A stretch of 63,522 nt of DNA, filler included, from Parasitella parasitica NRRL 2501 (GCA_025201805.1; 14 parts of 14 records of this genome joined end to end with filler, not necessarily neighbours in it); one strand, 5' to 3'; positions 8,871 through 23,287 are shown, numbered from the whole stretch's first letter. Notes: generated by a model from the sequence alone, not told the origin. Program-made: numbers and translations.

Positions 8871-10318
8871 ATGGCTGTTGAAGCAGATAACAGCAATGAT
8901 ACACCTCAGGTACCATCCAGAGAAGTAGTGGTAAACACCAACATTGCCGAAAGCGATGCTGAGGAATCCGAGGTAGATGAAGAACACGAAGAAATTACTG
9001 AGCAAGGTAGATTAGTACAGAGTTTTTCAGCCCAAAAAGTGTATTTACACATTTCATAGGTCTTTTGGATGACTATCCCGATGATGCAGAGGTAGAGTAT
9101 GTGGACCAACAAAGGGGACATATTGCTAATTCAAGCCAACATTCAGGAAATCCACTGTATCCATATGAGAGTGAGCAGCATCCCTAATTTAGGGTTAGAG
9201 AGATTCAAGCAAGTTCAGGTGAGTAAGAGCGTTTAGTACATTCGTGTAATGTATTATTGATTCGGCGCCATAGAGCATATGCCTTCGTCAAAACTTCATT
9301 ATTGATATTGAAGGGCTCGATTCCTTGTCTCAACTAACCGAATTGGACTTGTACGATAACAAAATTTCTCATGTTCGAGGCTTGAACAACCTAGTCCAAC
9401 TGGAGTAAGTTACGGTTAAATAGTATGCAACGAAATGCAAGGCGATATCTGATGTCTTGTTAGAAATTTGGATCTATCGTTCAACAAAATCAAACACATC
9501 AAAAACATTGATAAGCTCACACAGCTCAAAAATTTGTATTTTGTTAGTAACAAAATCTCGAAAATTGAGAATTTGAATACATTGGTGAATGTAACAAATC
9601 TTGAGCTCGGCGCTAATCGTATCAGAGTCATTGAAAACTTGGACAATCTCATCAATTTAACACAGTTATGGCTGGGTAAAAACAAGATCACAAAGCTGCA
9701 GGTAACAGCTAGATGAAACGAGAAGAAAAAAAAAATCAACGAAATTTATGCCTTTGTTTGTACAGAACTTGAGTGGTTTGAGAAGCTTGAAGTCGTTGAG
9801 CATTCAGAGCAACCGTTTGACTAAAATCGAGGGATTGGAAGAGTTACACGACCTGGAGGAATTGTACATGAGCCATAATGCCATCGAAAAGCTCGAAGGC
9901 TTGGACAATAATGTAGGTTTTCGCATTGATTAAATTTACCTTGGTCTAAAAGGGAATATAGCTTAAATTGAGCACTTTGGACATTGCCAACAATCTGCTT
10001 GTGTCCATCGAGAATCTATCACATTTACCACACCTGGAGGAGTTCTGGGCCAACAACAATAAATTTGACAATGACGTATATGGTCAAATCGAGAAGGAAT
10101 TGGGATCTATCAAGACGTTGAAAACTGTGTATTTGGAAGGCAACCCCATGCATCTCAAAAACAGAGCCACGTATCGCAACAAGATCAAGCTTGCCTTGCC
10201 CGACATTGAGCAAATAGATGCAACGTAAGGTTTTTTTTTATTATTATTATTACTATTATTTTTGTCTGATAAATCGACCCAAAGACTAACATCAATGACT
10301 GATAGACCTGTTAAATAA
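8871..10318 (+). CDS. SDS22: Protein phosphatase 1 regulatory subunit Sds22/PPP1R7 (leucine-rich repeat), multi-exon
   Basis: Acidic N-terminus, then LRRs (LDLYDNKI, LDLSFNKIKHIKNI, LELGANRIRVIENL, LWLGKNKITKL, LSIQSNRLTKIEGL) and a C-terminal cap VYLEGNP..YRNKIKLALP.IEQIDAT|PVK*. The last intron is 10225-10305. Confidence 0.93.
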
Positions 10319-15638: not shown

Positions 15639-16734
15639 AAAAGTAGGTCCATAAAGTACATGCACGCAACAGACAGTAAAAAAAAAAAAAACACATACAC
15701 ATACACACACACACCCTGTTACAAACAATTAGCTAAAGAGTAAACACGAATATAACAGCAAATTCCAAATTGAAATCAGCAGGAATTAATAAAATTATTT
15801 GCTTGAGCATCATGTTCTATATATACGCATACACACTGTACAACTGACCCTTCCGCTGTTTAGAAAAAACAAAAAAATAGGTAATATCCCCTTGCCACGA
15901 GCAACTAGGCATGAGGGCATCAGGCACCAGGCATAGGCATGCTCTCTTTAACCCTCTTTTTCCATGCTAATGCAATATATAAGAACTGTGTATTTGCAGG
16001 ACATTTCTGCCTGCTTTAGGAAGCTTGCCCAGAGTATTATAGAATATGATATTAGTTTTGCTACAGAAAGGCTGCAAACAAATGATTCACTGATTTCTGA
16101 GGCAAGATGCAAATGCGTTTTTATTGTTCAAATTAGATTAAAAATCGATCCTTTTTTTTTTTTTCCTTTACTTTTTTGTACGTCGTAAATATGGGTGATG
16201 ATAATACCTACAATGATTGTATGGAGGTGGCTATTGCAGGCTGTATAGACCAAGCATTTTTAAAATACGTGTATATTTCAAGTGCAGTTTGGTCGTCTGT
16301 ATTAGCACTAATAGGCAAGTGTTTTCTCGCAGCAATGCAAAGACAATAAATTAACCCTACAAGAACACAGCAAAATAAACACAATTCAGCGAGGAATAGA
16401 GTGTATAAATGCTTTGTTTGGTTTTGTAATTCTCATTCAAGTTTCGAATTTTTGAGTAGTCGGCGTTGAATCAAGTATATCTCATTTTCAAAAACTAGTT
16501 AAAAATATATGGAAGCTTCAGAAAACTATAAAAAAAATATTTGCGTATGCAACAAAGCGTGAAAAAATGGTCATGTATTTTGATTTGAAATAAGAGCTCT
16601 TTCAACAGAGTAAATCATGTTGAAAGTCGGGCGAAATAGCTTGAATCAACCAAATTAGGAGATTCGAAATCCAAAAAAGGCGATTTTTTAAGCTGTACAC
16701 TCCGTTCTAATCAAAAAAGCATCATCTTTTCCTC

Positions 16735-21715: not shown

Positions 21716-22223
21716 TTAGCTTGTAGGCATCAGTGCGATCAGCGAATAAAGATTTCTGAAAAGAAAACAAAACAGAACCAGAAGAAAGAGATTGTTGAAT
21801 AATTGACATCGCCTTGCTTGCCAAAATTTGACATTTCAGATCATCATCTTCAAATAAAACGGAGCCAACCAAAGGAATATCAGCCTTGTTGTCCACATGA
21901 CGCTTGCTAGGCTGAACAAATCGTTTCTTGCCATGACGAGAGGCCATTACAGCCCACGTCTCAGTTGGAATAGTTGTCATGGAGTGTAACTTTTGTGGTG
22001 TGTGTAGTTACGCTATCGAAAAATTTGCAAAAAAGTGAAAGAGTTGTATAAAATGGTTAAAACAACTGATCTTGAGTTGAAATTGAGATATGTTGTAGAG
22101 CAGAAACGGATGTATCGAAGGAACTATAGATGCAAGATGGATGTATCGTAGTTGTGGAGATATCGTCGTTTGAAAATGGCGTAAAACAGAACTTGTAAAA
22201 AAGTGATGTATACGCGAAAGAGC
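21716..22223 (-). mobile_element. 5' end (leader plus start of ORF1) of a second L1-like family
   Basis: The ORF MTTIPTETWAVMASRHGKKRF... starts at 21980 and has a near-identical copy at 51291-51750. The leader terminates in TACGCGAAAGAGC (22211-22223). Confidence 0.72.
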
Positions 22224-22920
22224 ACTTAATTTTTTTGTGTATGAAAATTTTGTTTGTTAAAATTTTTTCAGTTATTACCAAATATTTAAAAAGATTGTTA
22301 AATTATATAAAATGTTATAAAAAGCAAAATTTATATTTTTGTAAATAAAAAATGTTTTAAATTTAAACAAATTTAATTAAAATTGTATAAAGTTTTTACG
22401 CAATTATTATTTTTAATATTATGTTGTTAAAAAATTTTCATTCTAATTAAAATTATATTTTTAAATATTTTATATTTTACGTTTGTGTAATTAAATAATT
22501 CAAATTGTTTTTGAAGCCAAACGTTTTTTGAATAATGTATTTTTTTAAAATATAAACTTTTATAAGTAAGCAAAAGAGTTGTAAACCAAAGGTATATATA
22601 CACGCATTTAAGCACATAAAAAGCAAATGTTTGTTGCCCAGTTTTTTGATAATAAAAGTTCAATGTATAATGCTCAATTTTTTTTTATAAAGCATTGTTG
22701 CCAATTTCAAATATAAAGACAGTTAATTAAACGTATTTTTTAATTCATACAGAAAGTGGCATAGGTCATGTATAGCACGTAACTTTTTATTATTCGCACA
22801 GGTCCGGCCTAGATTCATGGAAGAATCGAATTTTTTCCATGTGCATCAGTTTTACTTTGTTTGAGTTTAATATAGGTATCGCATACGTATTTTTACTTTT
22901 GACTATATTGTCTCATAGGT
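22224..22920. other. Candidate core centromere A: AT-rich tract plus phased CATAGGT motif array
   Basis: ~540 bp at ~87-90% AT, then AGGT sites at 22763, 22800, 22874 and 22917. The motif at 22763-22812 aligns without gaps to 52347-52396 and 61194-61243. Confidence 0.7.
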
Positions 22921-23001
22921 TTAATTGTTTCTCCGCTACTACTCTAACTTGTTGAAGCAAAGAAATCTCTCCATTCGGGGAACTGGACTTGTGGCTAACT
23001 C

Positions 23002-23073
23002 GTTGCTGTTGTCCAGTTAATAAAAGATACACTTTAATACAAAAAAAAAAAAAAAAAAAGTTGCTGTTGTCCA
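23002..23073 (+). mobile_element. 44-bp 5'-truncated retroposed insertion with poly(A) and 14-bp target-site duplication
   Basis: GTTGCTGTTGTCCA (23002-23015), then gttAATAAAagatacactttaatac-A19 (23016-23059), then GTTGCTGTTGTCCA (23060-23073). Confidence 0.85.
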
Positions 23074-23101
23074 AGGTTTATCATATGTTGCGTGTTGTAG
23101 A

Positions 23102-23287
23102 GCTCTTTCGCGTAATCAATTTTTTCAAAAAAAGCTCAACTTTGAAGCACGATATCTCGACAACCAGCATACATCCATCTCGCATCCAACTTTTTTTAGA
23201 TACATCCATCTCAGCTTTACAACTTATCTGAATTTCAGAACGATTGACCTTCGTTTCGACATATTCTGAATTTTCGAACAAATAGCA
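23102..23287 (+). mobile_element. LINE-associated 5' leader, inverted relative to 22057-22223
   Basis: Begins GCTCTTTCGCGTA and contains GATATCTCGACAAC..ATACATCCATCTCGCATC. It is the reverse-complement homolog of 22057-22223 and nearly identical to the reverse complement of 60496-60582. Confidence 0.7.

Follow-up and report, generated by a model that had tools for sequence, protein, structure and literature searches.

A single-copy AT-rich segment between diverging Grem-LINE1 elements as a probable core of a Mucor-type mosaic centromere

Organisation of the contig

The locus lies on a contig of 1572 bp (positions 21716-23287) in the window, i.e. the whole stretch of 63,522 nucleotides. Two 5' ends of Grem-LINE1-type elements are placed head to head in the contig, one on the minus strand ending at 22223 and one on the plus strand starting at 23102, and a spacer of 878 bp separates them. 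The first 717 bp of this spacer (22224-22940) have a GC content of 21.6%, and for lengths between 717 and 878 bp the GC content is 21.6-24.0%. Based on depth and composition the segment 22224-22940, which has no assigned strand, is a candidate for a single-copy centromere core. In the contig, Rfam finds only a sub-threshold snoRNA match inside a LINE and the tRNA scan has no match, while the only tandem repeats are a run of 19 A and weak 15-mers.

The left LINE is transcribed leftward, away from the core. Its ORF1 starts with an ATG at 21980 on the minus strand and is cut by the contig edge, so that the first 88 codons are present (21716-21980). Using phmmer against a library of 1.8 billion proteins, these 88 residues have 56 protein matches, the best with an E-value of 4.4e-36 and approximately 77-78% identity. 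No relative on record is above about this identity, and an exact look-up of the truncated product gave no record. The full-length relatives are 450-520 aa long, have weak matches to the CCHC zinc knuckle (PF00098, PF16588), and are found in M. lusitanicus CBS 277.49, M. circinelloides PS15 and 1006PhL, M. velutinosus, M. plumbeus and Parasitella. In CBS277.49 they are encoded directly upstream of a reverse-transcriptase/zf-RVT ORF2. The ORF2 downstream of ORF1 in the related loci contains the domains Exo_endo_phos, RVT_1 and zf-RVT, i.e. the domain set published for Grem-LINE1 (10.1101/706580). All properties of Grem-LINE1, a non-LTR retrotransposon of the L1 clade in Mucoromycotina (an ORF1 with CCHC, an ORF2 with AP endonuclease, RT and zf-RVT, a poly(A) tail and no LTR) are thus found, with the ORF2 domains read in related loci and only parts of elements carried by the contig.

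The 5' UTR of the left LINE (21981-22223, minus strand) ends at 22223 with the 5' terminus GCTCTTTCGCGTA. The homology to other LINE copies stops exactly at this position in the related loci L001, L003, L008 and L009, and at 22216 in L007, and the DNA upstream of the LINE end is unrelated in these five loci. In core-proximal LINE 5' ends the terminal 25-40 nt (...GATGAATACGCGAAAGAGCC) are often present two or three times in tandem. Such LINE-end copies are located at 9047, 9089 and 9127 in L009, at 429 and 455 as well as 1129 and 1161 in L003, at 8998 and 9197 in L147, and at 22223 in the window. Joints in the public runs (see below) at which the sequence goes back indicate such tandem ends also for other LINE copies in the window's genome.

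On the right side, the core is followed by a 5'-truncated internal fragment of a Grem-LINE1 ORF2 (22948-23098, plus strand, interrupted at 23016-23059) that points away from the core. The fragment is 90-92% identical to L008 14169-14264 and L009 14118-14213, both inside ORF2. Its depth in the public runs is approximately 100 times single copy, and the ORF2 letters from these runs differ at 3 of 30 positions from the CBS277.49 copies and at 1 of 30 from the PS15 copies. The interruption on the plus strand is a 44-bp LINE 3' tail (25 nt followed by A19). It has 97.8% identity with L008 15668-15712, a LINE 3' end, and a perfect target-site duplication of 14 bp, GTTGCTGTTGTCCA, flanks it at 23002-23015 and 23060-23073. 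The uninterrupted (empty) target is present in L007, L008 and L009. The region 23002-23073 is a textbook case of an extremely 5'-truncated retrotransposition event. The poly(A) insert is masked in three of the four public runs that were compared. The 36 nt directly before the motif described below (22720-22755) and the LINE 3' tail region at 23014-23049 have a similarity of 72% (CAGTTAAT.AAA...TTTAATAC); this may reflect a LINE tail that has decayed, or coincidence between AT-rich sequences.

The second Grem-LINE1 5' end (23102-23287, plus strand) consists of 5' UTR, is transcribed rightward, away from the core, and is cut by the contig edge. It matches the LINE 5' UTRs in L008 (84%), L009 and L003. 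On alignment, GCTCTTTCGCGTA forms the start of both flanking copies (22223 on the minus strand, 23102 on the plus strand), and they contain an inverted repeat of 89 nt (22078-22166 and 23149-23237, 80% complementary). The strands (minus for the left LINE, plus for the right LINE and the ORF2 fragment) show that both flanking elements are directed outward from the centre. That the contig is an orphan is explained by short-read assembly, which breaks in the multi-copy LINEs on either side.

A chimeric contig was considered and ruled out. One unitig of the public runs spans 22195-22974, and a single-copy contig of 130 nt covers the junction at 23072-23165, so both junctions are supported.

The first-pass annotation of the window had already placed a LINE 5' end at the left, and this agrees with the ORF1 start at 21980 on the minus strand (E = 4e-36) and the terminus at 22223. 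It had overlooked the right side, i.e. the ORF2 fragment, the 44-bp tail with its target-site duplication and the inverted LINE 5' end from 23102.

AT tract and box array

The candidate core starts with a high-AT tract (22224-22560, no strand), which is 87.5% AT over 337 bp and enriched in A/T runs of at least four. The stretch directly before the motif, 22561-22762, is 74% AT (approximately 74% also for 22561-22745). The enrichment was calculated for the 299 bp from 22224 (87% AT), the longest stretch where every 50-bp segment has at least 80% AT. Here A/T runs of at least four make up 0.35 of the bases vs 0.20 in shuffled sequences (z = 3.5). A BLAST search with the AT tract against the other cores described below gave no alignment.

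The AT-rich DNA is followed by the motif block (22746-22812, plus strand). It contains the box CATACAGAAAGTGGCATAGGT (22746-22766) with the core TGGCATAGGT (22757-22766). There is also a second box in the block, CACAGGT (22797-22803), with its AGGT 37 bp downstream of the first one (start to start). Two more ATAGGT boxes are found in the distal part (22813-22940, plus strand), at 22872-22877 and 22915-22920. ATAGGT is thus present three times within 160 bp (at 22761, 22872 and 22915), always on the plus strand; 0.41 copies are expected, and none of 100 shuffled sequences reached three. The full context of the box in the core is ...ACAGAAAGTGGCATAGGT..., with the second AGGT box at +37 and the further ATAGGT boxes on the same strand.

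The description given in the first-pass annotation is partly confirmed by these data. In addition to the LINE end, its 50-mer motif stands, at 22763-22812, and the 41-bp span from AGGT to AGGT (22763-22803) matches a real spacing that is common to other cores (+36/37). Its figure of 85-95% AT was too high, as the 539-bp tract 22224-22762 is 82.6% AT overall. The motif was correctly located within the conserved block but began too late; the best-conserved block starts 17 bp upstream, at 22746, and only the last four letters of TGGCATAGGT had been included.

Copy number and paralogous contigs

Six public runs from six studies, with two organism labels and contig totals of 31-37 Mb, contain at least half of the sampled words of the contig. 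Four of them, from four studies, were compared along the contig. The region 22195-22974 is one unitig with zero differences in all four runs, and its depths of 168, 50, 26 and 40 correspond to a single copy. That the core is the same across four studies points to a strain in common use. In the LINE flanks, on the left side up to approximately 22245, the summed depth is 20-100 times single copy. Such a LINE depth is compatible with a gene-free pericentromere of 15-75 kb as in Mucor, the contig itself being only 1.57 kb.

In other single-copy contigs of these runs the match to the LINE end stops at 22219-22223, a stretch without alignment follows, and the match starts again at 22746, 22760 or 22761. 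At least three such paralogous contigs exist in run X3 and two each in X1 and X2. In one of them, with a length of 681 nt, 22761 corresponds to position 545, which puts the motif approximately 519 nt from the LINE end vs 537 nt in the window. The first-pass annotation had reported a pattern from three contigs, in which a LINE end is followed by AT DNA of comparable length that does not align between them, and then by a common motif. Of these three contigs the analysis covered the one at 21716-23287, and the pattern is reproduced in single-copy contigs of the public runs. Hundreds of dispersed copies, which it had named as an outcome that speaks against a centromere, are absent from these runs. 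A high-copy element is excluded, because the depth of the core is single-copy and only few paralogous contigs are found (at least three in X3).

Cores in other Mucor species

Pericentromeric DNA was fetched from annotated assemblies via the LINE ORF1 proteins, which gave related loci with a total of 374 kb. In these, every switch from leftward to rightward LINE orientation has a short core with this organisation. One core is from M. plumbeus (L003), three are from M. lusitanicus CBS277.49 (L008, L012 and L013), two from the telomere-to-telomere assembly of M. circinelloides PS15 (L009 and L014), and the others from M. velutinosus (L146, L147 with the same core in L148, L149, L150 and L152). 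L150 and L152 appear to be a single locus that was assembled in duplicate, and the number of distinct fetched cores is therefore 11. The seven cores that were measured (that of the window, L003, L008, L009 and L012-L014) are 590-880 bp long with 16-25% GC, and each has 273-493 bp of 85-88% AT.

The box TGG(C/A/T)ATAGGT is found at the edge of the AT tract in 10 of the 11 fetched cores, from four Mucor species; L012 has CAGCATAGGT instead, and the forward box of L013 reads CGGCATAGGT. TGGHATAGGT has 10 matches in the 374 kb of related loci, and all 10 are at the edge of a core AT tract. None is inside a LINE in these 374 kb. The tandem LINE junctions with the same orientation (L010, L015 and L151) have neither AT tract nor box. 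A metagenome scan with GTGGMATAGGT N0-3 TGTRTA gave at least 120 matches, and among the assessable ones none had 80% or more AT upstream or resembled a Mucor core.

When the cores are anchored on the box, the consensus across species is TGTA(A/T)ACAA..TGGNATAGGT, and TCATACAGAAAGTGGCATAGGT is the corresponding sequence in the window. A further AGG(G)T follows at +36 in L012 and at +37 in L013, the window and each of the M. velutinosus cores. The 220 nt after the box contain two to five AGGT and no ACCT in every core of the compared set. After the 10-nt box the window continues with CATGTATAGCACG. The continuation of the motif, CATGTATAGCACGTAAC in the window, is closest to ATGTATAACGTATAA in M. 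plumbeus, and it differs from GTTTACC.TAGGGT in M. lusitanicus, from GGTTTAT.TCGATTAGGT in PS15, and from M. velutinosus. As GTTTACC, which is specific to M. lusitanicus, is absent, the contig probably has a source other than CBS277.49. The cores L008 and L009 are located approximately 170-260 kb from the ends of sequences of 4.4-4.9 Mb, which fits the mostly acrocentric chromosomes reported for PS15.

Two of the M. lusitanicus loci show further arrangements of the box. L013 has two inverted GGCATAGGT boxes, at 9113-9122 on the minus and 9595-9604 on the plus strand, around a single AT tract. Its left box adjoins a fragment of a LINE ORF2, which is broken at most approximately 15 nt from the ORF2 position where the fragment of the window begins (approximately 22948). 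One paralogous contig in the public runs has sequence in common with the window from 22910 onward. The junction between the box and the ORF2 fragment may be old or recurrent. In L008 a partial box, CGGCATAGGTAGGTGTTTAGG, is found at 15775-15795, approximately 60 nt past the poly(A) tail of a LINE and at a distance of 6 kb from the core. This box has no AT tract and may be what is left of a core split by a LINE insertion.

Comparison with known centromeres

In 2019, nine centromere cores of M. lusitanicus (at that time M. circinelloides f. lusitanicus) were defined by ChIP of Mis12 and Dsn1 (Navarro-Mendoza et al., 10.1101/706580). These cores are 744-1132 bp long with 25-31% GC, and in each a centromere-specific MEME motif of 41 bp comes after an AT-rich stretch. 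The motif starts the major binding peak and is reported only at the nine centromeres; the Grem-LINE1 repeats point away from the core (10.1101/706580). A study from 2023 described the kinetochore-binding region as free of H3K9me and the pericentromeres as large inverted LINE repeats. In PS15, a centromere-specific motif was used to place ten centromeres, and the chromosomes are mostly acrocentric (10.64898/2026.10.23.761428).

The core in the window is similar to those of M. lusitanicus in several respects. It is a short AT-rich single-copy segment (717-878 bp with 22-24% GC, compared with 744-1132 bp and 25-31%), the AT stretch is followed by a conserved motif, and Grem-LINE1 elements point away on both sides. 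Further, the core of the box, (C/T)GGCATAGGT, is found in the window as well as in L008 and L013 (CAGCATAGGT in L012), and L012 and L013 also contain the second box at +36/37. However, in M. lusitanicus the box is followed by GTTTACC.TAGGGT and then by units of 22 bp similar to TTTGTATCGCGATWAGGT, whereas the window has CATGTATAGCACGTAAC and a wider spacing of the boxes. The AT tract of the window is also longer, approximately 540 bp vs "~100-200 bp" in 10.1101/706580. An alignment of L008, L012 and L013 contains a conserved block of approximately 40 bp starting with GCATAGGT, of which the window has the first 8-10 nt and the box at +37. A possible link to the published 41-bp motif, which is presented as a logo figure, goes via this alignment of our own of three CBS277.49 loci.

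Similarly, the centromeres of PS15 are identified by a motif beside a highly AT-rich stretch within Grem-LINE1 clusters (10.64898/2026.10.23.761428). L009 and L014 carry the exact GTGGCATAGGT of the window, and the LINEs diverge from a core of 590-660 bp. In contrast to the window, PS15 has telomere-type repeats at the far end of the AT tract ((TTAGGG)3 in L009), and the second box is located at +18 and not at +37. In L009 the (TTAGGG)3 is found at 9145-9162, and in L014 a degenerate copy, TAGGGTTGGGGTTAGTGTTAGGGTT, at approximately 9108-9135; in both, the telomere-type repeats are placed just inside the LINE terminus, opposite the motif.

By analogy, the architecture can also be compared with the point centromere of budding yeast (CDEI-CDEII-CDEIII). 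Both have an unconserved spacer rich in A/T runs beside a short conserved box, and a position that is set genetically. However, the spacer in the window is four to six times the length of CDEII and there is no sequence similarity to CDEI or CDEIII. Further, Mucorales are without a CENP-A nucleosome, and the core in the window would be embedded in retrotransposon heterochromatin, as regional centromeres are.

Interpretation and alternative explanations

We suggest that the contig very probably contains the complete core of one mosaic centromere of the Mucor type (Mucorales), and this reading is supported on the sequence-level features that could be compared. The first-pass annotation had arrived at the same reading, and it agrees with what is found, a short single-copy AT-rich segment and a conserved box between diverging Grem-LINE1 elements. 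We rate the core as a further example of the centromere type published in 2019 and not as one of the published centromeres; it would already be known if the centromeres of the source strain have been described. The architecture would not surprise a specialist, as it has been known since 2019 and was described for M. circinelloides as well in 2026. Two features fit the centromere reading less well, the 74% AT of 22561-22745 and the continuation after the 10-nt box, which is unlike the versions in M. lusitanicus, PS15 and M. velutinosus.

The segment could instead be a relic or inactive core, i.e. a copy that was displaced or duplicated within the pericentromere and is not the current kinetochore site. 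Partial boxes such as the one at L008 15775 are found outside cores, L013 has two inverted boxes around one AT tract, and LINE insertions have remodelled the right edge of the core in the window. However, the module in the window is complete (AT tract, full box, second box at +37, LINEs that diverge to the left and to the right) and does not differ between the four runs, each from another study, while the partial copies elsewhere are without the AT tract. A relic is unlikely.

It is less plausible still that the AT tract and the motif belong to a transposable element, for instance as promoter or subterminal region of a LINE or another repeat, with no role at the centromere. The module always abuts LINE 5' ends, and the 36 nt before the motif resemble the LINE 3' tail region (72%). 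Yet the depth is single-copy vs 20-100 times for the LINE, the homology of the LINE ends at most 8 nt from 22223 in five loci with unrelated DNA upstream, the same-orientation LINE junctions in L010, L015 and L151 are without AT tract and box, and across 374 kb the box is in no LINE. We give equally little weight to the idea of an AT-rich replication origin, or some other non-centromeric cis element, between inverted LINE arrays. AT-rich DNA next to a short conserved box is the logic of a yeast ARS too, and the sequence alone does not separate origin function from kinetochore function. However, the homologous segments of M. lusitanicus are bound by Mis12 and Dsn1 and the motif is reported only at its nine centromeres (10.1101/706580), and an origin should be present at a much larger number of sites than the few paralogous contigs suggest.

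Proposed mechanism

If the segment is a mosaic-centromere core, 22224-22940 would be the site of kinetochore assembly, by homology with the M. lusitanicus cores that carry the ChIP peaks of Mis12 and Dsn1. A sequence-specific DNA-binding factor could read the box array and seed a CENP-T/Mis12 kinetochore in a lineage without CENP-A and CENP-C. The AT tract with its many A/T runs might act as a flexible spacer that is unfavourable for nucleosomes, in the manner of CDEII in yeast, and the inverted LINE arrays would form a pericentromere silenced by H3K9me and RNAi. To the best of our knowledge, Mucorales are the only fungi that lack CENP-A.

On the motif side, 12 core sequences, which represent 11 distinct loci and five Mucor lineages, have a series of (A/T)TAGG(G)T on the same strand, headed by TGTA(A/T)ACAA..TGGNATAGGT. 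These boxes resemble the telomere unit TTAGGG, and true or degenerate TTAGGG repeats are present in the two PS15 cores at the opposite end of the AT tract. It can be speculated, as a long shot, that the array consists of conserved polar sites similar to telomere repeats, and that a Myb-type TTAGGG-binding protein or a paralogue of it was recruited as the identifier that replaces CENP-A and CENP-C in Mucorales.

Significance

The core bears on how the kinetochores of Mucorales find the chromosome. The window would add one complete core to the available set, with a variant of the motif that differs from those in the four species compared. Letters that survive across species are TGTA(A/T)ACAA..TGGNATAGGT, together with the box at +37 and the strand polarity, whereas sequence drift affects the AT tract and the larger part of the rest of the motif block. 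The conserved letters narrow the likely (predicted) protein-binding site for pull-down or one-hybrid screens. Further, orphan contigs with the order LINE, AT tract, box and LINE in short-read Mucor assemblies become recognisable as probable centromere cores. Finally, if the telomere-like reading of the boxes is true, it would make the factor that specifies the centromere directly searchable.
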